Source of the DNA: Lytechinus pictus
Taxonomy: Eukaryota
Length of the DNA stretch: 64,000 bases
Assembly (NCBI RefSeq): GCF_037042905.1
Contig: NC_087246.1
Span: 16,988,001 to 17,052,000 of the forward strand
Reading direction: 5' to 3'
The first letter of the stretch is position 1; every line of letters starts with the position of its first letter. The notes beneath the pieces were generated by a model, which ran no database searches, was not told the DNA's origin, and saw nothing but the letters and a program-made list of their open reading frames with translations. Both the position numbers and the translations under genes were made by a program. Below are positions 4,585 to 62,100 of this stretch, one piece after another.

Positions 4585-7500
4585 CTAAAATCAAGAACAA
4601 AATACAGAATAGATGTGTCTTTGAATGTTTGTATCTTGGTACAGAAAATGTAAACAATGTTTACAGTTCACCTTGTGATTAATCCTAAAAAGGACTGTCG
4701 AGATGGGGATAAAGAGAAGCTGATGAGAAATGAAATTGAACTGAATGAGTGGGAATTGACAAGGGAGAAAATTATAGATAAGAGGGACGAGTAGTCTTTT
4801 TGTGAGAACGGTAGAGAATACTAATGTATATCAGACTGGATATTTTGTGAGGACTAACAGAGGTGATATGAATTTGCATCTTAATTTTGGGGAGGAAAAA
4901 CTTATTTCTCAATGACTAGATCAACAGAAACCTTTTCCAAATCCTAGCTCTCTATACCAACAAATGAAGTCCCTCCATGATCATGATAAAAAGTAGAACA
5001 TACCATTCAAATCAAACAATATAAATAGCGACAACTCAGAAACAAAACAAATTTATGCAGCTGATGGAGGCTAAGGGAATCATTTGGGAGTCTACTTGTA
5101 ATTGGTTTTAAAGTTCAGCTGTTTGACTGACTTATCACAGCACAAAATTTGGAACTTACAACAATAAATCTTATCACTTATTGTTCCTGGATCAAACCTA
5201 AGCAGGGCAAGGACTACTTCCCCCATGACTTCTCCCTTTTGTGCTACTTTAATACACCCTGTAACTCAGCTTTACCTAGCGTAGTGGTGAAATGGTCATG
5301 GGCTGGCAATGTCTTTGCACAGCGTTTGTTCTTGTAGTCCCACACACGTAATGTTTTGTCATCAGCCACACTAATGATGAACTTGCCACCGGGATGAAAC
5401 ACAGCTCCTCTCACCCAGTTATCGTGTCCAGTCTAAAGAGATGAAGAGGAATAGGAAAAGGGATGCAAAATGTGAAAAAAATTCTATATTATTAAAATCA
5501 TATCAGATCAATGTAATGTGTTAGTTGAAACATTTTTAATTGTTCTCTCTTTCTACCATTGATGTTGACGTCAACAATTATTTTTTTAAAACTTTATTTC
5601 ATGTTTGTTATATATCAAATCTTTATTCCATCACATAGAATTCTTTTATCAGTAAATGTGAAGGTGTCATCAATAAATATCTTTTTTAAGGGAGACTGAA
5701 CTACAAGGAGCTCAAGCACAAAACCACCTTCTACCATAGGAATACATGCATTATAAGTCTTATACTTACATAAAACATGAGTGATCCAATCTTTATTGAA
5801 AAGGGAAATTGAAGGACACTTTACACATTTGGTTTTTTTTTTACCGGTATGTTATAAACATTTGATTTCTTTACAAATATTGTGGTATAAATGTGAATAG
5901 TAGCATTTATGATTCTAGAAGGTATATAACAATATATGATGAAAATGCTTCATCATGTGCAAGGACCTATGAACAACAAGAAATGTCCAGGTCTTGCTGC
6001 TGTTCAAAGTGAATGTGGTGTATGGCATCTAAGCTAGTGAATTGTGTTATTTGATTGGCTGCTAGCAAATCTGTCATAGAATTCTAGCGTTTGTGAAAGA
6101 CAAGGTGCCATCAAACAGGGCCTTGTACGTACCAAAGTCATGATGCAACCTCCAGCGCTGACATCCCAGATCTTAATAGCCTTATCACGTGAGCCAGACA
6201 CAAGGAATGGTGTAGAGCGAACTCCTTTCTTCTGCAAAGGTATTGACAATCAAACTCGATCAGTAAAGCAAATCCTTTACTTATGATCGCATTCCAAACA
6301 AACCATGCAAGACTAGGGATAGCAATGCTCTACACATTGTTGGCAATCATCCGGACAGTTTTATGTTGAGATGACAGTGTAAAACGTATTTCACAAAAAT
6401 TGAGTGTAAACTTTTCAAACTTTTCCACAGATTGCCAAAAATATATCTGAAAAATTATTAATTTATTCCTGTAAGACAGAAATGCCTAAGAGTGCAACTT
6501 TGATTTTCTGCAAAAAATATAATATTTTTAATTTGTTGACCTCAAATAATGGTTCAAACCCACAAAATGTTGCAAGAGCATTCATGCAAATGCACTGCAC
6601 AGGGGGATAACAAATGAAGCTAGTTAAGTTTCTTAACTTCATAGTAAAATAACATACTGTCTTTTCTGGACACCTTTTCACTTGAGTGCATGATAGCATC
6701 AAAATAAAGAGCACAGTTCAGCGCATCTAATTCCTGTTGCCTAAACTATTACATAAACTTGCAAACCAATGAAAACTCTCAAAAGGACACTTTGTTTGGC
6801 TGTTGAGCATTGTTACTATGCAAATAACAGTTTGATAGCAAGGATAATGCATCAGGGTCCTAATTGAGTACATTCTTTGAATAATTACATGAACAGCATA
6901 TGTGCGTCAAAGAAGAAAAAATTGCCATCTCAATGTTTTATGCATAACATACATGTACATGTACTCCTCAATCCACAATTACAAATCAACTTATCGCACA
7001 AGAAGAGGCTATGACACTAAGGAGGGGTGCACATGGATGTTTGGAAAATAATGATAAAATAAGTGTGATGATCAAAAGCTTGGTTATTCATAATACAAGT
7101 ACAAGAAAAATTATATATCTCCATATCATACTTTATAATTTCATCACTTAATTTGTAAGGGTTGCAGTTGATCTTCTTGAACTTCATATAATATAGAGCT
7201 CTACAAATAATCATAAGAAGTGGCAAGGTGTGAAATATTCAATGCACAATCGTACATAAGCAGGGTATGAACTGGGTATTAAGTGAAGAAGTGGTTTAAT
7301 TACAAAGAATGCACATGTATGTATCTTCCTGCATGTCATTCTCTCTCTCCAGCTCTACAAACCTTAAAGTATCTCTAAACTTTATTTATCTATAACCCTT
7401 TGCAAAGTATTATTCCTCATTTAATCAAAATTACTCAAACATGTTTGATAATCTTGGTGTCACTCAGAAAAAAATAAAAAAATAGGCAAAATGATGGAAC

Positions 7501-10500
7501 CAGTACTTCGGATTTTTACTACTTTAGATCTCTGAGGGAAAGTGATTGTTTGGTTTTCACAGTAGGGATGGGGAAACAAAGTATATAAACAAAATTCTGC
7601 TTGAATCTTTGGGTATTTGACCAAGACAGGGTACATCATTGTAACAAAAACAAACCAATAGCATACCAAAGCGATGATATCACTTATTTGTTCTTTTTTA
7701 TGTCATGTCAGTGATCTTATACAATATCTCAGTGGAGCATGATGAAATCCATCCATAACCAAATTTTGGTGGGAATCAGTCCATGGGGACCCAAGATGTG
7801 GCCATATGAATAACTACTTAGCCCAGAGCTGCCAACCTCTGTTGACCAATAAACATACTGGTCCATAATTAAAATCATATTCTGAAGAAAAAAAAAATCG
7901 TAAAAAAATTGATAAATTACACATATGAAGCATGCCAATCAAATTTAACAAAAAACATATTTTGCAATAAAAATCATATTTTGTTACTTTTGATTATGAA
8001 AAACATACTAAATATCGTTAAAACATATAAGTTGGCAGCTTTGTTAGCCCCATTGAAATCAGCGAAAGTTGGCCTGGTCCCAAAAAGTTAGGAACCAGTG
8101 CAATTTCAACAGGGCCTAATGGGTATTAATTTGGTCATACATTGGGCCACCATAAACTGATTCATGTCTCAATGTTGGTGCGTTGAGATTTTTTCATCAT
8201 GCTCAACAAAGTATGGTCACGGTAAATGCTAAAATGCACAGGAATAACATTGATGGCATCACACTCCAGTACTCCATACACACATATAAAAATGATTTTA
8301 ATTTGGGAGAAGATTCCTCGTGACATCACGCACAGGTCACATGCTTCAAACGTTCATGATGCAATTGTCATGCAAGGTCAAATGCTACACAGAAACAAAA
8401 GGAGACAATGCTGTAAACCAGGGGATGGTTTCACAAAGTGACTGGTCAAAGACTTTTCACTGACAACTGTTGCCAGCAAAAGAAATTCTTGCATCTCATT
8501 GGCCGAATTTTGTCAGTGAAAATCAATAACAAGACACTCCAATAAACGGTCCCCTGAACCATTATCTACCTCAAGACCATCATAGTTGTTCAGCTGTCAT
8601 CACCAGATAAAGAGGAAAGAACAAATGTTTCTTGAATTAATATGATCTTGGCTTTCAATTGAAAAAAAAATGATCTTAATACTAGAGCTTAAAAGCATTG
8701 TGGAAATAAAAAGCTTTTATTACTAACTTTATTACTTCTGTTAATGGTTAAAGAAATCTTTTGCTTGGAAAAATGTGAAGATTTATTTTCAAAATCCATT
8801 AGCTTATAGCTCTAATGAAAGATACATGGAGCAGCAATTTGAAGAGAATGGACACCCTGGTGTCTAGTTGGTTTCAGTAAAATAAAGCAACATGTAGGTT
8901 TGGCAAAAATCCATCAACAGATAGCAAAATTACAAGTTTTAATTTTGTTATGTCACACGCAAGCAGCTAACCCATATTTCATGTGATTTAAAATATCATT
9001 AGTCCTCAGAAACTGAAACATATATTAACTGTGTATTCAATTATCATTATAGAAATCATTAAATCCATGATTCTATGAGCATTTGGTTTTCAGTCTATAT
9101 GAACAATTAAACAGTAAGAATTAATTGGATTTATATTACATGGAATTTTCCCCCAAAACAAAACATTAGATTATTCCATACTCTGCTATTTTTTGATAGA
9201 TTTTCAGCATTCATCACTGACAAAGTTTTCATTCATTGTTACCATAGTAATCAATACTTCTCAGCCAATCAAAACAAAGGATTTCCCTGGAATTCTCAAT
9301 GAGTGGCTATTTGTCAGTAAAAGCAACTGTCATGTAACTGCACATAGGAGTATTGGAATCTCTTCTAATTCTTACCTTTTGCATTTTCCTATCTCCTATT
9401 GTGTTTTCTGATCATATTCTGCCAGCTTTAGTTTACATTCCCAAGACTCTCTCCTCTCCCATATTGTTCCTCCCCATCCTCCCCTCCAGAAATGTCAAAT
9501 GAGTCATATACCTTTAACTTTGGAAACTACAATTAGGGTGGGGAATGCCGATTTTGGCTACACATTCTATATGGTCATGATCACTCAGCTGTAGTTAACC
9601 TTTCCTGAGACCCCTTCCCTTCCCTTTTCTTACCCTATTCCTCACTCAACTCTATGTGTCAAGAGTCATACACACCTCTACTCCTTTAAGTTCATTCAGG
9701 GTGGAGTATGCCGATTCCGGAGCCCAAGCTACACACACTATATGGTCATGCTCTCTCAGCTGTAGTTTACCTTTTCTCAGTCACCCCTCCCTTTCCCTAC
9801 ACTATCCCTCACTCCACTCTATGTGTCAAGAGTCATACACACCTCTACTCCTTTAAGTTCATTTAGGGTGGGGTATGCCGATTCCGGAGCCCAAGCTACA
9901 CACTCCACCACATGGTCATGCTCCCTCAGTTCTAGTTTACATTCCTTGGTAGCTACCACCCAAACACGTAGGGTCTGCAATAGAAAGAAAAAAAAAAGAA
10001 TGATCATAATTATAGCAATATGTATCAAACATCACCAGGGCATGGGATGCAACATAAAGTAGGCAATCATGTGGATTAGCGGGTGATTTTAAGTTTGGTG
10101 TTGACAGCTGATGTTGGAGTTTGGTCATTTTTTTACACCAGCGACAGCACTAAACTTGAAATGACACTGGTGCTGAGATTACTATTAAAAAATATGTGAA
10201 AGGAATGAGGAATGGTGTCATTTTTCTAAATTCTCTTCAGTGTTGGAACAAGGTCAGGCAGCCCGATTCACACTCAAAACACTAACACCTACACCCACAC
10301 ATGAATTACCCTTTGCTTTAATGAATTCTTGAATTTTGATACATGTATATCTCAACGGACATCATCATGATAAATACACATGGAGGAGTAGTAAGGAACC
10401 TTTTTTTTTTTGAAAAAAAAAGGTGATCGATGTCGCCAATACAGGGATTACATTCATTTTCTAAAACATTGAATGGGAGATTCTTTCAGGGCTCAATAGC

Positions 10501-13500
10501 ATCAACATTGCTGGGCCATACCCCAAAATGTGGTCACTTTATCTTACATGAGAAGATATCAAACAGCTTTACCTGATCATTAGAAGCAGAAGCCAGTAGA
10601 GATCCATCTGGACTTGGCCTAACCATACGAACCCACTCTCTATGTCCAGTGAATGTCTTCACACAGTATCTAGAAAGACAAAATATGTAACATGTTAAAT
10701 TTAAAGAGTAAAAAGCATTGCCCATAGATGCATAAATCAAAATGATGGTACAGATAAGGTACATTTTCATATTTGGCTATAAAAGGTATGAGTGACAATT
10801 CAAAAGGCTTTTACTTCAAACATTAAAAAAAAGTTTAAACCCTAATAAGACTGGGGGGGGGAGGCTCCCCCACAACATTTTGTATGATAAATCTGCTGCG
10901 CAAATTTTTTTGACTGTGCCACTTGCTGACCTTTTTATTTTAAAGTCATGTACAACTTTTGATACCAAATTTGCGACCCCCCCCCCCATGCTGTTTTCGT
11001 AGCGATCTTATTGCCGGGATCATAAGAGGGGGGCTGAATTTTCCCCCAGTCTTTTTAGGGTTAAATCCTTGGTGACACCTTTTTTGTCAAATAAACAAAT
11101 GTTAAAGAGATAGTTGATGACATGTACCCACACACGGACAAATGCACACATCATTAATTCTTTATTTCCCATTTTGGTCATTTCTTCAGCTCTAATTCCA
11201 GTGTCTCAGAATAGTCATACTAAGACTGATGGTGAAGCTATATAAATTTTAATGTTACTATAATGATCATTATCGTGCATGGAAATGTTTCTTTTATCAT
11301 TATATCATTACTGTGGGTAATAATGAACATAAAAAAGATAAGAATTACTTGAAAAATGGTGTGGAGGGGAAAAACAAAACTCTACACTTTTGTCCATTAA
11401 TAGAGAAGACAAATTATTCAACTTAACAGTAATAAATCTTTCTAATCCACTATACAGGGATATTTTTCTCATAAACTAATTCAAAAGGATGAATAAATAT
11501 AAGAATATTGAAAGCTACTTTCCTGCAGACAATAATTTGGCAAGAATCCATCATTCATTTCCTCATTAGCAATTCATTGCACTAGTATATTAATGCTACA
11601 CCTCAAGCAGCAGATTGAGCAGACATGGTTTTCAAGTCATTTCTAATCTCACAGACAGGAAGTAAAACGAGTGTACATATTAACCTAACTACATGATCAT
11701 ATTTCGGAATTGTCTAATAACCTGTCTGTTGTGACTAGGAATGAATACGAAAAGGATGTGTAGCATTAAACCATGGGAAAATCATTTCACTTGAGTAAAT
11801 ATAAACAGTAAAATTTTGTAGCTGCTTAAAGAATGTTCAAAATTAAATAAAACAAAAAAGAGTGAGTTCAGTACAAACCAATTTGGTTTGAAAGCTGTTT
11901 TTTTTTAATGTCTAAATAGGTGTACTCCAGTAGAAAAGCAGGAGATCCCTCCCGCATGACTGAGTCATTGGCCCATATTCTGAAGTCACTAACTTAGGTC
12001 ATGATTGTCACTATATCACTGGATCTACAGTTACAAAAACTAAACTTTGTGAAATCATGAAATCTAAGCTGAAAAATGATTTGATTGAAAAAAATCCCCA
12101 ACACAGATAAGCACCTGTGTGATAATGTATTACTATTGACTGGAAAAGACCCACAAATAGCTTGAATGTCATGCTTATTTTGCTGATTTCTGCATTGATT
12201 CCTCATGCTTACAAGTGTAAATGGTGAAGAAATCACAGACATTGGTGGAATATTATATTACATGTAATTTCAGGACATCACTGTAGGTGAATAATACCAC
12301 CCATACTTAAGAAAATAAACTATACCGATGAACAAAAAAACAAAAAAAACAATAACATACAGACATTTTTTTTTTGCATGTCTTCCCTCTAAAATCTATG
12401 TGTGCACCGAGTTTCATTAGGCAAAAATGAGGAGACAGCTCACTATAAAGCAAGAGATTCCCTGATTTATTGTTACCATGGCAATGCAATACAACAGTGA
12501 GTGTTGCACTTTTCCACTCCAAGACTAACATGTGCCTAGTCTCTGGGAGAAAAACTGACAAAGTACTTGGCTATGCAAGATACACCAGGGGCCCAAAGCT
12601 TAGCAATGATCGTAAAACATTTTTTCTGCGATTGATTATATTGGCTACAATGTACAATCAATCGTAAAAATCAAGCATATGATTAATTGCTAACCTTTGT
12701 GTTACGGGACCTAGCACACCTGACACAATCAAAAATTGCATCTTGCATATCTTTTCTCCAAGATTATTTTTTAAATATTTTTTTTCACTGTTTTACTTAA
12801 TAATATCTGCAATTTTTTATGAAATGGAAATAAAAGGAAACTTGAAAAAAAAGCATGCTTGTTCTGAATGCATCACATGTCATTGCAAGTTCAATGCCAA
12901 TGTTTTAAGGAGATACACGTTTTCAACTGTCCATCAAGTATACTTGGATAATTCTTATAATTAAAAACAACTCGCACACTTCAGGCAATAACTTGAAAGC
13001 TAGAGAACCATTTGAACAAAGTTCAATGGCAATTTTTTTCCCAAACTCTAGAATAGCAATGGTTTTAATGGCACTAATAGTGCAGAGCACCTATTGTCAT
13101 TCAGGAAAGAGAAATATTTTTTTTTAATTGAAGACATATTTTCATAGTGGGCTTGTGAGAGATAGTTAACCTTCTGTCTTCTCATTAAGTATCATTTTTA
13201 TATTGCTCTAATCATCATCATGATCATCATCTACAAACATAACCATTCATATCATCATATAATATATCACCATCGTCATAAATATCGCCATTCTCCTCAT
13301 CATTATCACTGCCATCAACATCATAGCTGTCAAGCTTATAATCAAACTTGACGTAATCAACATCACAAACATCACCACCACCATCATCATCACAACCATT
13401 TTCATCATCACCACCATTCATCACAGAATAGGAAATACATGTGGGCGACGGGCAATTTCGCCCTCACGACAGCCCAAATCGCCCCTAACATTCCCAGAAA

Positions 13501-49666: not shown

Positions 49667-49963
49667 CTGAAAAATAATGTAATCAAGTGCAGTGAAATTT
49701 GTCAAAACATAATTGACAATCATTTTGTATAAACCACTTAGCAAAAACTTGGCCTCATCAGGCATAAAACAAAATTTTAATTTATGTGCAAGAAAATGTA
49801 ATTCTACATCATTCAAACCTTAATGAGGAATCTGAGGATAACAAAATTCATCACATATAAATTCAACATATCTGTAAAATACAGGTTTGTCTACATATAT
49901 GTATACTCTGATATAAACTATGACTATCTAGGAGTATCATAGACTCTAGGATCCCTCGTATTG

Positions 49964-50126
49964 TTATCTTGCCACTTCCTGAGGAGCAGGTGATGCGTCT
50001 GCTGGCTGGGACTCTGGGGGCGGGCTGGCGGGATCTTCCACTTTCTCGGTGGGGTTGGTCACTGTGACTTCTTCTTTGTTCTCAGGCTGCGCTTCTGTGA
50101 CAGTTGCTTTCTGAATACCTCTGATG
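49964..50126 (-). CDS. CLUH: CLUH last coding exon (acidic, Pro-rich tail)
   Basis: cccacag| acceptor in phase; [19 protein letters not shown]...APQEVAR then TAA. Confidence 0.82.
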
Positions 50127-53100
50127 CTGTGGGCAATAAAGTAAGAAATTGTATTATTATTTTCTTTGAAATACAAATTGATACATCGCAAACATGAATG
50201 AATGATAATGGATGTAGAATAAACTAAGAAATTTTATTTGACTTTCTGACTTGTTTTGCATGAAGCTTTAAACAAATAATGTGTGAATTCATATCAATAA
50301 GTAGTTTGAAATAAAAAATACTGAGTGAGTCTCTGGCAAGTATTTGCTTGAAACCATTAATTTGTTGCATCAGGGAGACTGGGTGGTCCCTTCAAAAAAG
50401 CTTGTGGGAATTACAGAGTTCAGCAGACAATGCATCCAAAAATCATGACTGTACGTTTCACATATTTTTCTTGGAACATAACTTAATCTATCCAATCACT
50501 TAAATAGGTAATAGACCAAATGGTCAGACAAAAAAATGGTCATTAGACCAACTGCTATTAGTCGAAGTGACTCAAGACCAGTGAAGGTACTATCACCAGC
50601 TGGGAAGAATGATAGAACAACTATTATCTGCTGGGATAAGTGATATACAACTATTAACTGCTGGGATGAGCGTTAGTACAACTATTACCTAAATTACCTG
50701 CTGGGATGAGTGATAGTACAACTATTACCTGACTGGAATAAGGAATATTCCATTGATCATATTGAGGGTTTCAAGCACACTGCTCATGGATGGATGACTG
50801 ATAGGAATAGGACGTAGTGCTGCCTTAGGACCACCTCGTTTGATCTCATTCATCTGAAACGAAAAAGTAAGGATTCAATTACTTAAACTATTTTAGATAA
50901 TTCATTTTAAGAATATGTACTCAGAATATTAGATCTTATTAATCTTATGAGTACATATGACAATCGACTTTCTATGTATGTTTTTCGATTTAAACCTTGA
51001 GGGTTAAGGATTAATAAAAAAAGACATATTCCGGATAACTAATTAAAAGATTGAGTTTGCAGTGACATAGCAACACATCTGATTTATTGGATAATATGCT
51101 CTGTTCTAATTTTGAAAGCCCCCCCCCCCCATCCACCCCAGTAATGGCCATCACACCTTGCAATTTTTTCTAAACAAATAGAAGTACACTTACTGTTTTT
51201 TGAAGAGTAACGGCTTGTTGTGTGAGGTAACTCAGACATTCTGAACTCTCCTTTGTCTTCTCATGATTATCACCAAACTAGAGGAGATCAAAAGAAATGA
51301 GGAGGTAAAGATTCAGGCCTGTATTCTGAACTCTGGTTTAAATTAAACTCTGGTATTAAGTTGTGGTCTGTGGACACCCAATTGTGACACAAATATCTCA
51401 CAGTAAATGTTTTTTTATCACATTTTGTGATGAATTCATTCACTTTTTTTCTTCAAACAACAACTCAAGTATTTTTCTACACAAATCAAGCATTGGAAAA
51501 AAAAAACAGTAAAGATTTAAAAAAAATATTAAAAAATTGTAGGTATTTTCAGTATACAGATGATACATAGATGTGAGTGCATCGGTAGGTTTTGTGAGCA
51601 TAAGGGAACTATGGAACTGTTATGCGCTTTGTTGGTCTAGACTAGTTTCCATAGTTACCGCATGCTCACTAGTCCTACCAATGCACAAACAAACCTGTGT
51701 ATCATTTTGTTATATAGAATGGTGGAATATTTTGGCTAAAAATCAATTTTTTACAACCATGCATAAGTAATTACCGACGCATGGCGTGCCATGCATCTGG
51801 TAAATTTGTTATGCATAAGTAATTACTGGATGCATGGCTGGTCATGCATCCAGTAATTACTTATGCATGATACCTATTCTATAATTCCCCATAGAGCTCA
51901 GAATTATGGCCATTGAGATTCAAGTATAGAAGAACTAATTTCCAAGTTTCCTCAAAATGTTACCCCCCTTCCCCCACCCCCTGGGATTCTCTAAAAGAGT
52001 TTCAAAAGGTGGAATTCTCCAGAAGGCTCCCTGTAAAGGTTCCCCCTAATCTTGTGCAATAAATGATTTCAACAAATAATTCTAACCTGTTCGCGATAGA
52101 TAGTGTATGCATCCTTCTCATTTCGTAATGCTGAGCGGAAATCACCACAGCACGAATGCGTTCTTGCAACAAGGTGGTATCTGTTAGGGCAAAATTGAAA
52201 TGAGGAAATATATCTCAAACACTATTAAAATCAATAAGGATGCTAACAGAATCTTTGGAATTCAGATGTATGAATTAAATTGGTGTACTAAGACCTGAAA
52301 TGTCTTGGCGGAAAATTTGTTTCTTAAGTATATTGCAAATAAGAACATCTCACAGACAGAATTTCAAACCTAATATCTTCATGCAAGAATTTTTTTTTAT
52401 CTATGTTTTTGGCATAATATCTGTCTTCTATTAAATTGAAAATAAAAGAGGAAAGTTATTTGCTCCTAACTGAAAATATTCCAAACAGAATTGGTAAAAC
52501 TCAGTTATTAAGCATGAAAATGTATTAGCTTTAAAGCAAAGTAAAAACATTATCTTAAATAAACGGAGAAACCCTAATGAAATAAGTTTCTTACCTGTGT
52601 GCTGCCTTTAGACTCTTAGCTCCAAAGTACTTGATGTTTGTCTCCAATGCCTTCTCTAGAAACTTGAGAGCCAGCTCAAACTGATTAACACCATGAAGAA
52701 CTAGACCAATATTACTCTGCAAAAATATTCATTAAAAATAAGAAATATGTAACGTATGTAGATAACTGACAAGGAAAAGCAGTGTTGGGACCAAAGACAA
52801 ATAAACGCATGAAAGGAAAGGCTGTTCCTTCAGCTCTGTGCAGTTGTTGTTGTACGTGCAACACACTGACTGGGGTTACCAATCATCAAGCAGTATTCCT
52901 TTCTATCCAACCAAATCTAAATAAATATGTTAAAAGAATTTATGTATACACATGGCAATGAGATACAGAAGTTCTCAAAATACATTTAGAAATTTGAAAT
53001 TTACATCTTGAAAATTTAATTTCACAGCAGAATGTGCCATTGAATGATTCACAGGGGAAAAAACCAGATAATTGCAAGACAAAAGACATTCTTTTCTTGT

Positions 53101-56100
53101 TAAGAGCATACCACATTATTATCTATCACTCCCATCCACTTCCAAATGATTTGTATTTATATATCATTACAGTCTTTACAGCACACAAGCACATTTCAAT
53201 ATTAGATTTGTGTTTGTTTTAAAAATTCTTTGGTTTGATAAGAGTATATTCTGATTAAACTCACATCGAAGAGAGCCATTTCAGGATGATCCTCGCCGTG
53301 GATAAGAAGCGTTAGATAACGAGCCCTGTACATCAGCTTGAGGGCGCTCACTGCCTGGCCCGCTGCAAACCTGTAGAGGGCCAGATGCATCTGTACAGAA
53401 AAGAAAACATGCCTCATGGTTTGAATTTTTACAATCAAATTCAAGGGACTGTTTTTATAAACAGCAAATTATCTCATCCTACAGGGTTCAATGTAAAAGA
53501 AGAGTACCTGTATATTACTCCACAGTGGCTGTTCGCATAAAAAATACATGTCTTGGTAACCATAATAGACTGAACAGAACAGTTTTTATACAATTACTGT
53601 GTAAATGATAAGATATGATTTAAGAAATGGAGACCTAGAATGGATTCAATGTGACAGGGGGGCATTTCAGAAAGCTATTAGTAAATTATGCAAATTTTTA
53701 TATACAAATAGTGACCGTTTCTTGTGCTACATGCATACCACAAATGTTCCTTGCAATTCTCATGAAATTTTGATAAACAATATTTACATTCTAATGCTTG
53801 TTATTTCAACAAGAAATTTTGAATTTTTAAATTGAGCACTAATCTTGCGCAAGAAAAGGCCATAAGACATGTGAAAAACTGTACATAACTTAGTTTTATG
53901 AAACCCAACCCAATCCCTTAGGCAGTGAACATGGAGAAAAGAAAAACATGACAATAACTCACATATTCTGTGATGGTGTTTGGATGATCAAGACCGTTAC
54001 ACCTCTCGCTCATCATGACTGCCTTGTGTTGCATCTCAATGGCTTCACTCTGCTCACCCATCAGGTAGTGTAGTCTGGCCAAGGTTCGCATGCAGGCTGC
54101 AATCTCTGGGTGCATAGGTCCATATACATTGTTGAAGAGGTTCAGAGCTTCGCTGATCAGCTCAAAGCCTTCACGGAAGCAGCCTGGTGAGAAAAGGAAT
54201 CAAGAATGCAAATTGAGCCTTGTTGAGACATGACACAATGCTAAATCTCATAAAATGTAGGACATGAATATTCAGATTGCTCACTTACCAGTATATCAAT
54301 ACGTATTTATAAGAAAATCGAGAACCTATATTCAATCTTTACTGAAACTTCATGTGTTCTTGACAAGGTTCCATAACATTTGCTCTGGCGTCAATTGCTC
54401 CATTATAAATTCCACACTGTTCAAATGACCAACTTCAACCCTGGACTAAACTCTATACCCTACCGTAAACCCAACATAAAACCCTATTGCAACCCTACAT
54501 CTTACACAAAACAAAGACCTAAGCAAATGTCGCAGGAGCACATGTCATGTCACCCTTTACACGGCCATTTTTCCAGCAACCTACCTTGCTGTATCTTGGT
54601 CTGTCCACTCTGGAAGAAGTGATAGGCGTCCGATGCGGTAGGATTGATGTGTTTGACCTTTGGGAACATGTTTAGGATGTCATTCTCATTGAAGGGCGGC
54701 TTGTTTTTGGAGTCCAGTTCGTAATCTCTCAAGAGTAGCTGGACACCAAGCTTGGAGCAGAACTCCCTGAGAAGGGTCATCTTCTGAAGGTTGTAACGCT
54801 CTGTGACGGAGTCTATGCTTTCACTGTAGGATAAAACAAGAGATGCTGTGGTTCAATTGACAATTCCTTGGATCCCAAACCATAGGGTTCAAACCCCATT
54901 GCAGCACCACAATCCACTAGTAATTTATTAACCCACGGAGGTTGTGTCTAAATTTATATAGTTTCTCTTAATCCTGGTAATTAGCAATTACATATGGAAT
55001 ATCATAGGCAAGGCTCGACATCACCTCGGGCAACCATTAATGAAAAAATATTAAGTTATGGTGGCCCGAATCGGGCAACCAATAATTTTCAGAATAGCGC
55101 AATTTTTCTCCCCATTTTGCACGCATTTATCAACTTTCTACAATTCAAATTGCAAGCCAGTTCGTCGTGCGCCCTTTTTGTTGATCTACACACAAACACA
55201 CACACAAAGTTGACCTACCGCTATAGCATTAAGTAGCTTTTATCCAGCCGGCTGCGCCGGCCGGCTGGCGTGAGCTTTGCATGCTTGAAGCAGCTGTGCG
55301 TTAGCTGCTTACTCAGACTCAGGGAGCTGCGATACGAAATGTTGCTGCTAAGAAATCTTCCACAGAACTATGAAAATCCAAGTCAAAGTCACATTTTACA
55401 CCAATGAAATGCCCTTCTACAGACCTTTTTGCTAAAATCTGGTGTATCCTGATTATTTGCAAGCATTAAAAAGAGGAATCATGACCTTTCTTTTGACTCA
55501 AAAAGACCGATTTCCAAATGAAAATGATATACATAAAAACACATAGGTGAGTACATCACAGTCCCACATGTGCATTTGTATGTTTTTACTTGGTTTCTTT
55601 CGAAGCTGTGTCTTTCCGGTCTTTTCTAGCCAAAAATAAACAGACAGTTACTTTCTTTCTTGTTTATAAATGATTTCTTAAACAACTCTTGAGAAAGAAA
55701 ACACTTTGGGAAGGCATTTCATTAATATGAAATGTGAATTTTTCCAACATTTTGGCAAATTTAGGGAAGGAATTTTCTCACACTTTTTTTTGCTGTTTTA
55801 TTTTCTTTCATTTTTTTTTACAGTGGTTAAACCATTTATACCCATTTATTCATTTTTAATGTTTTTCTTTATATTTTTCGGGCCACCAAACTTTAATATC
55901 GGGCCACCAAAAAAAATTATTCAAAGATTTTGGTGGCCCGAACGGGCCACCACCAAAAAAAGTTAATGTGGAGCCTTGTCATAGGAAAGAGGAGAATCAA
56001 GACCATTTCCAGTGCATGTTGTGGTGCAGTCATTTAACAAATGTTGATTTAACTTCAAGCTTATTATTACACACAATGAATTGGCAATGTAACAGACACA

Positions 56101-59100: not shown

Positions 59101-62100
59101 CATGTAGCGAATGTTGATGCCTCTGCAAGTTAAATCATAGAAAATCTAATGGTAGAGTATTCATCATATTGAAGCCTGTCTTTAGCTTTCATAAATCCCC
59201 CTAAATGCATCTATCAATATTCTAATCCATTACTAGATAATATGAATGTATATGCCCTAAAACAGTTAATCTGTGAAGGATATGAAATAAAATAAGTTTT
59301 CCAGATAAATTTGGTGAATTTACAAGGTCACTTTTTGGAGCCGATCTTGCCCTAAAATGACCAGGGTCATAACAAGGCATTCTTTTTTATTTATTTATTT
59401 GAAATCCATAAATCAGATTTATTATCGATGGTTACTTCCATAAAAACTTTGATTTTGATGAGCTATTGAGTGATGTTTTCATAATCACATCATCCACTAA
59501 ACACAGGAGTAATGCCAAAAATTTGTTCACAAATTATTATTACCTCCTATTAAAGCCTCTTTATTTACCACATCATCCTGGTTTTGTATTTCATTCTCCT
59601 TTGTAATGAGAAATAGGACTTTACTAGAGTAATGAAGTAATTTCAAGTTAGAAAAGTGTTCTTTTGACATTACTTTTTAATGATGTGAAATAAACCAGAG
59701 AAAATTTCTGACTTAGTGAAGTCACCAATGCAAGGTCAACTTATAATTTGTTTTGCATAATTCAGGGTGCTACGTAACTTTTTTGAAGCACTTGCCCAGT
59801 GGGGCAAGTAAATTTTCAAATAGTTGGAAAATACTTGCCCGAATATAGATTTCACTTGCCCAAAAAAATCCTTCAAAACAAAGTTTTATTGCTTCAAAAC
59901 AAGTTATAGCCTTATAGTTTTACATACCATACCACTGACGGCTTTAAAAATAAATTTTTCAACATGACTACTGATGTACCTTGTAGTTGTATTTCTTTTT
60001 TTTTAATGATTTTTATCTTGAACATGACAAAATATATGGTAAATATGCTCTTTAATTAGTTTCCTAATCTCATATATTTTCCATATATTTTGGAGGGGAC
60101 TAGGACACACAATAAAAAAAGGGGAAATCACTGAAAATAACCAGAGAAAAAAAATAAGAAAGGGGGAGAGAATGAAAGAAAAAAAGTAAGAAGAAAGATA
60201 GAAAGGAAGAAGAAATAAATAAAGAAAGAGAGAGAATGGCTGCGGGGAAGAGAAAGATGGAAAGAAAGAAAGAAAGGAAGAAAGAAGGGAGAGGAGGAGG
60301 GAAAGAAAAAAGAAAGAAAAAAAAAATAGAAAAAAATGAGAGGAAGAGAAAGGAAGGAAAGAAAGGAATTAATAAAAGGAAAAAAAGAAAGAAAAAAGGT
60401 AAACAGAAAGGAAGGAAAAGGGAAAGAAAGAAAACGAGAGAAAGGAAAGGAAGAAAGGAAGAAAGAAAAGGTATAAAGATAGATGGAAGGAAGGAAAAAA
60501 AAGAAAAAAAGAAAAGATAGATACAACAAAAGACAGAATGAAATGAAGGAAGGAATGAAGGAAAGAGATGAAGGCAGAAAGAAAAAATAAGGAAGAAAAG
60601 AAAGGATGGATGGAAAAAAAAGAAAGATCAAAAGAACAAAAGACCAAAAAAAAGAAAATCAGAAAGAAAGAAGGAAAGAAGAAAGAAAGAAGGAAGGAAA
60701 GAAAAAAAAAAAAAAAAAAAACTGAGGGGAAGAGAAAGGAANNNNNNNNNNNNNNNNNNNNNNNNNNNNNNNNNNNNNNNNNNNNNNNNNNNNNNNNNNN
60801 NNNNNNNNNNNNNNNNNNNNNNNNNNNNNNNNNNNNNNNNNNNNNNNNNNNNNNNNNNNNNNNNNNNNNNNNNNNNNNNNNNNNNNNNNNNNNNNNNNNN
60901 NNNNNATAGATGGAAGGAAGGAAAAAAAGATAGAATGAAAGACAGAAAGAAATGAAGGAAGGAATGAAGGAAAGAGATGAAGGAAGGCGGAAAGAAAAAA
61001 TAAGGAAGAAAAGAAAGGATGGATGGAAAAAAGAAAGATCAAAAGAACGAAAGACAAAAATAAAGAAAAACAGAAAGAAAGAAAGAAAGAAAGAAGGAAA
61101 GAAAGGAGAAAGAAAGAATGAAAGACCAAAAGAAAGGAAGGAATGAAGGAAAGAAATAAAGAAAGAAATGAAAGAATGAAAGGGATGAAGAAAGTAAGGA
61201 AGAAAAAAGACAGGAAGAAACGGTAAAGAATGGATGGACGGAAGGAAGACAGTAAGAAAGAATGAAAGGAAGGGGAAAATGAAGGAAGGATTAAAGAAAT
61301 AGGTAAACAAAGGTTGGATGGAAGGAAGAAAGAAAAGAATGACAAAAAGAAAGACAGCTATAGTAACAGAAAAAATGAACAAAAGAAGGAAGGAAATTTA
61401 AAGAAATAAAGAGAGATTCAAAAGAAGGAAAGATAGGCAGAAAGAAAGAAAATAGAGGAAGAAAGCTCAAACTATCCAGTCATAAATAAAGAAGAAAATT
61501 TATCAATTTCCTTGGCTAAAAAAAATGGTTACGAAAGAAATCACGTTTATCAACATACACACAAATGCATATGTGGGACTGTCAAACAATGTATTTCAGT
61601 GTGTGCGATACAGACGATCATTCGAAACCCGATCTTTTTGAAGCATAACAGAAGTGAAAATTTCTCCTTTTACTGCTTACAAAGGACAGAGCTACCACCA
61701 ATTTTTAGGAAATATGGACACTACAAGAATTTTCATTGACAAGAAATGTGAATTTTGACAGTTCTGAGGGAGATTTCTTCCTGAGCAAACTTCGTTCGTG
61801 CAGCACCGTACTCCGTATGCATCGGCTGCGTGGACTATGCGCTAGCTAGCTAGGTATGCTAGACTGCCATTGATTCTGTGTGTGTACGTCTCTGAGCTGT
61901 GTGTTTATTGCAGAAAATGGCGCAAATTTTGCAATTCGAAAGAAGAAATTAATGATATTGCTTTTTTGTCTCTTTTTCGTTTCTATATTTTGATGGTTAA
62001 ATATGGGGAATCTTTCTAAAATATAATTTCCATAGGAGAATTTTGCTTGCCCGATTCGGGCAAGCAGTTTTTGTCTTTGCTTCAAAACACTTGCCCGACT

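Follow-up and report, generated by a model that had tools for sequence, protein, structure and literature searches.

Evidence for a conserved, alternatively spliced 24-nt microexon in the LIS1/PAFAH1B1 gene of Lytechinus pictus

LIS1 (PAFAH1B1) is usually treated as a single invariant protein. The locus described here, which lies in a 64,000-nt stretch of the Lytechinus pictus genome (hereafter the window), raises the question of whether this gene also encodes a second, slightly longer form. A first-pass annotation had singled out a 24-nt segment on the minus strand, within the intron between exons 7 and 8, as a possible alternative, in-frame microexon that would insert the peptide LNNYDGLE into a variable loop of the WD40 domain. 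Automatic annotation would probably miss an exon of this kind, which was nevertheless callable from sequence alone.

The host gene is the LIS1/PAFAH1B1 orthologue. A tblastn search with a full-length, vertebrate-like LIS1 representative (P0037, the sole full-length LIS1 that a search of representative proteins gave) places its exons colinearly from 24702 to 5277 on the minus strand, as befits a LIS1 orthologue with a LisH/coiled-coil N-terminus and a seven-WD40 propeller. LIS1 representatives share 67-78% identity with the N-terminal exon, and the joined peptide of exons 7 and 8 matches LIS1 structures in the PDB with E ~1e-43 over 85 aa (residues 257-334). Exon 7 (9843..9974, minus strand, 132 nt, encoding TLRVW...LNELKGVE) and exon 8 (6133..6231, minus strand, 99 nt), the upstream and downstream constitutive neighbours of the candidate, are each supported by tblastn and bordered by RNA joints, at 9974->10573 for exon 7, at 5432->6133 for exon 8 and at 6231->9843 between the two, the last with 48, 64 and 71 reads in the three raw-read runs introduced below. 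The coding sequence of exon 7 ends in LNELKGVE and is followed by gtgtgt from 9842, and exon 8 starts at 6231 where cag is followed by AAGAAAGGA (KKG...). Both boundaries are phase 0, in agreement with the RNA joints, and enclose a phase-0 intron of 3,611 nt.

The candidate itself, CTGAACAACTATGATGGTCTTGAG (8570..8593, minus strand), reads from 8593 to 8570 as eight codons, CTG to GAG, that specify LNNYDGLE in phase 0-0. Its 3' splice site comprises the pyrimidine tract ttgttctttcctctttatct (8605..8624, minus strand), which is UCUU-rich and set back 11 nt from the exon, a 9-nt spacer (ggtgatgac, 8604-8596) and the acceptor AG (8594..8595, minus strand); the donor, GTAGATAATGGT (8558..8569, minus strand), begins with GTAGAT (8569-8564, the GT itself at 8569-8568) and, having neither A at +4 nor G at +5 in GAG/GTAGAT, is weak. 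At 24 nt, and bounded by AG and GT, the segment falls within the size limit for microexons (<=27 nt, or <=30 by some definitions). Since both flanking boundaries are phase 0, the insert keeps the frame and introduces no stop. Tract, AG, open exon and GTAGAT thus lie as the first-pass annotation had described them, and its placing of a phase 0-0 insert between KGVE and KKGV in a phase-0 intron agrees with the flanking ends at 9843 and 6231, both confirmed by RNA.

Such an arrangement is, however, cheap. The intron holds 90 frames of 9-60 nt that are open, a multiple of three in length and bounded by AG and GT, so that one of these by itself is to be expected by chance. Although the candidate ranks first of the 90 by a crude score of donor and pyrimidine run, the sequence alone would be weak evidence for an exon, barely more than chance, and the starting odds would be long against it. 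What lifts the candidate above chance is the combination of RNA junctions and cross-species conservation.

RNA was mapped on positions 5200-10800, using one set of assembled contigs (X1) and three raw-read RNA-seq runs from 2026 (X19, X20 and X21), chosen from a list that further comprised assembled runs of this organism (X2-X4, from the same study as X1, and X15-X18) and runs under a second organism label (X5-X14). The LIS1 joints 5432->6133 and 9974->10573 are present in all four, and X1, which carries these constitutive splice joints, is therefore RNA. One X1 contig, at depth 43.4, contains the joints 6231->8570 (skipping 2,338 nt) and 8593->9676 (skipping 1,082 nt); both have CT..AC ends on the plus strand, i.e. 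GT..AG on the strand of the gene, and they tie exon 8 to the last base of the microexon and the first base of the microexon to an end of exon 7. A second contig, joined 6231->9676 at depth 86.7, represents the skipping form, so that both forms are spliced to the neighbouring exons and inclusion in X1, from the ratio of the two depths, amounts to about one third; the inclusion form comes from a single contig of this single run. The depth of 5.57 in the X1 bin 8566-8752 equals 24 x 43.4 / 187, which places the coverage there within the microexon and nowhere else in the bin. In X19, X20 and X21, by comparison, 65, 74 and 76 reads join exon 7 to exon 8 (placements at 9843 and 9676 summed), the depth over the microexon is 0 and no microexon joint is listed at the threshold of 3 reads. 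Inclusion therefore differs between samples, from about one third in X1 to none in X19-X21.

These joints also bear on the possibility that the segment is not an exon at all, and that a conserved non-coding element of the intron has coincided with an artefact of assembly or mapping in X1. Inclusion is seen in a single contig, of which no more than 24 nt match the microexon, as such a reading would have it. Yet the breakpoints of the contig match the predicted AG and GT to the base and join the correct neighbours; a search of the 812-Mb genome that allowed up to 2 mismatches found the 24-mer nowhere else; and to assemble a k=31 contig at depth 43, numerous reads must have crossed both junctions. 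With the coding pattern of conservation described below, we consider an artefact very improbable, and the less likely of the two alternatives to a genuine exon.

Of the two junctions that the first-pass annotation had predicted, that from 8570 to 6231 is seen exactly, whereas that from 9843 to 8593 is placed by the mapping at 9676 to 8593, and the three raw-read runs contain no inclusion. The shift in placement has a local explanation. The 3' two-thirds of exon 7, with the donor and ~95 nt of intron, are repeated in a 167-nt tandem array (9557..9940, minus strand, 2.3 copies, 87% matches), which thereby creates a look-alike donor at 9676/9675. The last 21 bases on the exon side are identical at 9843 and 9676, and base 22 is a heterozygous site (9864 T>C) whose variant allele is the letter found in the second copy of the array. 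Because the X1 contigs carry 21 bases on that side, identical in both positions, the two placements are inseparable there. Between 9677 and 9842, however, no depth is found beyond that which the 32 exon bases of the bin account for; the share of joints placed at 9676 (26%, 14% and 7%) tracks the frequency of the 9864-C allele (62%, 60% and 31%) across X19, X20 and X21; and X1 has two 9-letter loose ends at 9843, of mixed consensus (agreement 0.67), which fit one skipping and one inclusion form. From the depth, the allele-tracking and the loose ends together we read the junctions as 9843 to 8593, the upstream one being inferred, and 8570 to 6231. Use of the duplicated donor at 9676 was considered and rejected as the simplest reading, there being no extra depth at 9677-9842 and the share of joints following the 9864-C allele.

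Two further stretches of the same intron, 7788-8210 and 9127-9313, also attract RNA contigs or reads, whose loose ends run into unrelated sequence, the X1 depth reaching 287 at 9127-9313 and reads of X19-X21 lying over 7795-8207. These are most likely transcribed copies of repeats from elsewhere and not LIS1 exons.

Conservation was assessed with a 1,245-nt contig of a related species (L009), found through P0002, a protein whose exon-7 ORF reads into the intron. The contig matches this locus alone in the Lytechinus pictus genome, and is therefore orthologous, not paralogous, to it. Between the two, exon 7 has 87.9% identity, with 16 of 132 bases different; as 13 of these differences fall at third codon positions, third-position identity is 70%, and two of the changes alter the protein. 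Apart from two pieces, the intron cannot be aligned at E<0.01. The first piece is a 64-nt island (L009 647-709, corresponding to 8621-8558) at 90.6% identity, which contains the pyrimidine tract, a GGTGAT spacer, the AG, the 24-nt exon and all 12 of the 12 donor bases. Within it the microexon is identical at 23 of 24 positions, and the sole change, CTT to CTA, is synonymous, so that the peptide in the relative is again LNNYDGLE. The second is a 70-nt block downstream (L009 710-779, corresponding to 8421-8352) at 88.7% identity. Regulated alternative exons typically show just this combination, an exon conserved above the synonymous sites of its neighbour and flanked by conserved intron. Purifying selection is shown to act on the exon as well as on its splice signals; AG and donor are kept, and so is the 24-mer but for one synonymous base, which is the outcome that the proposal of a microexon had called for. 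A change confined to a third position, next to retained splice dinucleotides, is moreover the pattern of a coding exon, in opposition to the artefact considered above.

The 136 nt that separate the two conserved pieces in Lytechinus pictus are a dispersed, MITE-like repeat (8422..8557, minus strand, ~136 nt), which the genome contains in at least 40 copies of 73-80% identity and which has a 13-nt perfect internal inverted repeat (8454-8466 / 8510-8522). It begins 13 nt past the donor of the microexon; in the relative the orthologous site is empty. Being a dispersed repeat absent from L009, it was inserted in this lineage, without abolishing inclusion of the microexon. The repeat was itself tried as the source of the exon, an idea rejected because the repeat starts only after those 13 nt and does not take in the exon.

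The same data weigh on the other alternative, namely splicing noise or a cryptic exon with no selected function, to whose use the insertion of the nearby repeat may have led. The 90 comparable frames of the intron, the three of four runs that show no inclusion and an insertion only 13 nt from the donor are all what noise of this sort might look like. Against it, the exon, the AG, the donor and the downstream block are 89-96% conserved in a species that has no repeat at this site, while the remaining intron is unalignable; the single change within the exon is synonymous; and an inclusion of about 33% is far above noise. We therefore regard splicing noise as improbable, and a chance pseudo-exon is rejected by the X1 junctions and the L009 conservation. 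The reading that we prefer, with a probability of roughly 0.88, is that LIS1/PAFAH1B1 has at 8593-8570, on the minus strand, a genuine and conserved cassette microexon of 24 nt that is alternatively spliced. The microexon itself had been proposed by the first-pass annotation, and is borne out by the exact X1 junctions and by the conserved island with its unchanged peptide. On inclusion, it is spliced between exon 7 (...LNELKGVE) and exon 8 (KKGVRSTP...) and adds LNNYDGLE in frame.

Beyond this pair of species, no LNNYDGLE-like frame bounded by AG and GT was found downstream of exon 7 in two more distant species, L010 and L011 (10 kb each), and such a frame is likewise absent from the short contigs L012-L014. 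Scans of metagenome contigs with degenerate patterns for the microexon and its splice sites gave 0 matches, and an 85-aa query made of exon 7, the microexon and exon 8 returned the insert in no match, in a database of proteins of 47-149 aa from which this genome was possibly left out. On the present alignments the microexon is shared by two related species so far. In this it differs from known frame-preserving cassette microexons (3-27 nt), which neuronal and cytoskeletal proteins carry in their surface loops and whose other features it shares, namely a length of 24 nt in phase 0-0 with no stop, a short peptide added to a surface loop, conservation of exon and flanking intron above the synonymous sites of the neighbouring exon, and strongly sample-dependent inclusion. 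The kind of element is ordinary, a conserved, frame-preserving alternative microexon, but full-text searches of the literature on its host gene, LIS1/PAFAH1B1, found no described coding microexon.

How inclusion might be controlled is suggested by the elements that flank the exon. Inclusion would be governed by the set-back UCUU-rich tract, by the weak donor without G at +5 and by a downstream block with UGCAUG and GCAUG motifs. A neural programme dependent on the eMIC domain of SRRM3/4 had been put forward for this microexon, and such exons carry a UGC near the 3' splice site, a long pyrimidine tract and a weak 5' splice site (PMC8797185). Several features of the locus would suit that proposal. 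The 24-nt exon preserves the frame and inserts into a surface loop, in a protein that regulates the cytoskeleton; its inclusion is switch-like between samples; and its long tract, which stands back from the AG and holds UCUU/CUCU-like runs, resembles together with the weak donor those published features (PMC8797185). The likeness to the eMIC programme (SRRM3/4 or Srrm234) is accordingly one of size, tract and donor. What sets the locus apart is the defining UGC, which neither species shows: the 47 nt that precede the AG here contain no such motif, and the part of the L009 upstream intron that can be aligned does not contain it either, so that the cis hallmark of the class is lacking, a reservation that the first-pass annotation had itself attached to the spacer. 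The AG exclusion zone, judged by eye, is moreover only about 36 nt long, and no CUAAY branch site is visible. Dependence on eMIC thus seems unlikely as the specific form of the preferred reading, and the microexon should not be filed as eMIC-dependent.

A better-supported lead is the conserved downstream block (8352..8421, minus strand, 88.7% identical to L009), a candidate RBFOX-type enhancer. RBFOX regulation depends on position, inclusion being promoted, in the classical case, by (U)GCAUG placed in the intron downstream of the exon. The block holds UGCAUG at 8374-8369 and a second GCAUG follows at 8344-8340; both motifs are invariant in L009, and the intron as a whole contains three copies of UGCAUG where about 0.75 would be expected. 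Measured from the donor, the motifs lie at about +60 to +95 nt in L009 and at about +195 nt here, after the insertion of the repeat, and hence conserved and within about 300 nt downstream in both, as is characteristic of RBFOX-activated exons. The likeness to exons of that class is one of sequence motif, the UGCAUG and the second GCAUG in or near a conserved downstream block. RBFOX-type control of inclusion is accordingly put forward tentatively, as a possibility well short of even odds but likelier than control by eMIC. Pfam searches of the genome for Fox-1_C and for SRRM_C each gave 0 matches, and a control showed both searches to be uninformative.

As to the protein, alignment places the insert at T301/K302 of human LIS1, in a loop that is cut between SYSSISEATGSET and KKSGKPGP. 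The length of this loop varies widely among LIS1 homologues and its sequence is unlike that of the human protein, which bears out the description of the insertion site as a variable WD40 loop. The flanking exons align to residues 257-334 of human and mouse LIS1 (PAFAH1B1; PDB 1VYH, 8DYU, 8PQW); the solved vertebrate sequences differ in having no insert here, and their loop sequence is not conserved with respect to this species. Among known regulators, LIS1 alone makes direct contact with the motor domain of dynein, and does so through a site-ring on the smaller face of the propeller and a site-stalk on its side, R316 being one of the five residues altered in the site-ring 5A mutant (PMC8824474). 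By analogy with canonical WD40 topology, we infer that the insert would fall in an A-B loop, R316 being located in the B-C turn of the same repeat, so that the eight added residues would sit in a long variable loop ahead of the beta-strand with this dynein-contact arginine. As the ring site occupies the smaller face, an insert in the A-B loop should project from the wide face or the side. Inclusion would then leave the narrow, dynein-ring face of the propeller as it is and alter another of its surfaces, and might tune the binding of partners and not folding.

A conserved, switch-like isoform with eight additional residues in the WD repeat that bears a dynein-contact arginine would offer a natural variant of LIS1 for asking whether surfaces away from the dynein ring site serve tissue-specific regulation.

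The origin of the microexon may be sought in exon 7. The first-pass annotation had remarked that LNNYDGLE echoes the end of that exon, LNELKGVE, a resemblance that proves weakly above background: exon and donor together share 18 of 36 in-register positions, of which five are the common GAG/GT, against 9.8 +/- 2.6 identities for the intron at large, where 0.15% of windows reach 18. As a trace of origin the echo is suggestive only. Duplication of exon ends into this intron does, however, recur. In the second lineage represented by L010 (positions 10415-10500; ENA ERZ25069870 ctg2643), part of the 3' region of exon 7 has been copied (75.5% identity over 98 nt) to a point ~200 nt into the same intron, and this copy is independent of the 167-nt array described above. 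Given two such duplications, birth of the microexon by duplication of an exon end is plausible, if on balance doubtful. One could envisage that an old duplicate of the exon-7 3' end and its donor was trimmed to 24 nt and captured by an RBFOX-type enhancer, to give a tissue-switched, lineage-specific isoform with altered partner binding; we regard this full sequence of events as unlikely. If it were true, the acidic/aromatic LNNYDGLE segment would alter binding to the dynein stalk site, to the second LIS1 propeller, to NDE1/NDEL1 or to the PAF-AH catalytic subunits. In any event, the locus records both a tolerated insertion of a repeat 13 nt from a donor and exon-end duplications as raw material within an intron.

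Several minor observations concern the samples and the surroundings of the gene. The RNA runs contain many heterozygous exon variants, mostly synonymous and many of them within ~100 nt of one another (9864, 9879, 9885, 9921, 10590, 10618, 10627 and others), a density pointing to a very polymorphic species; the allele shares differ between runs, which therefore derive from different individuals. Upstream of LIS1, at ~49900-54850 on the minus strand, lie ORF pieces that by eye resemble CLUH (clustered mitochondria homologue). CLUH and PAFAH1B1 are neighbours in human 17p13.3, and if the identification by eye is right, that neighbourhood is conserved here. Further along the window, at 60000-61400, a long CT-rich tract of low complexity surrounds a run of N (60742-60905) and gives rise to S/F/L-rich ORFs in every frame of the minus strand.
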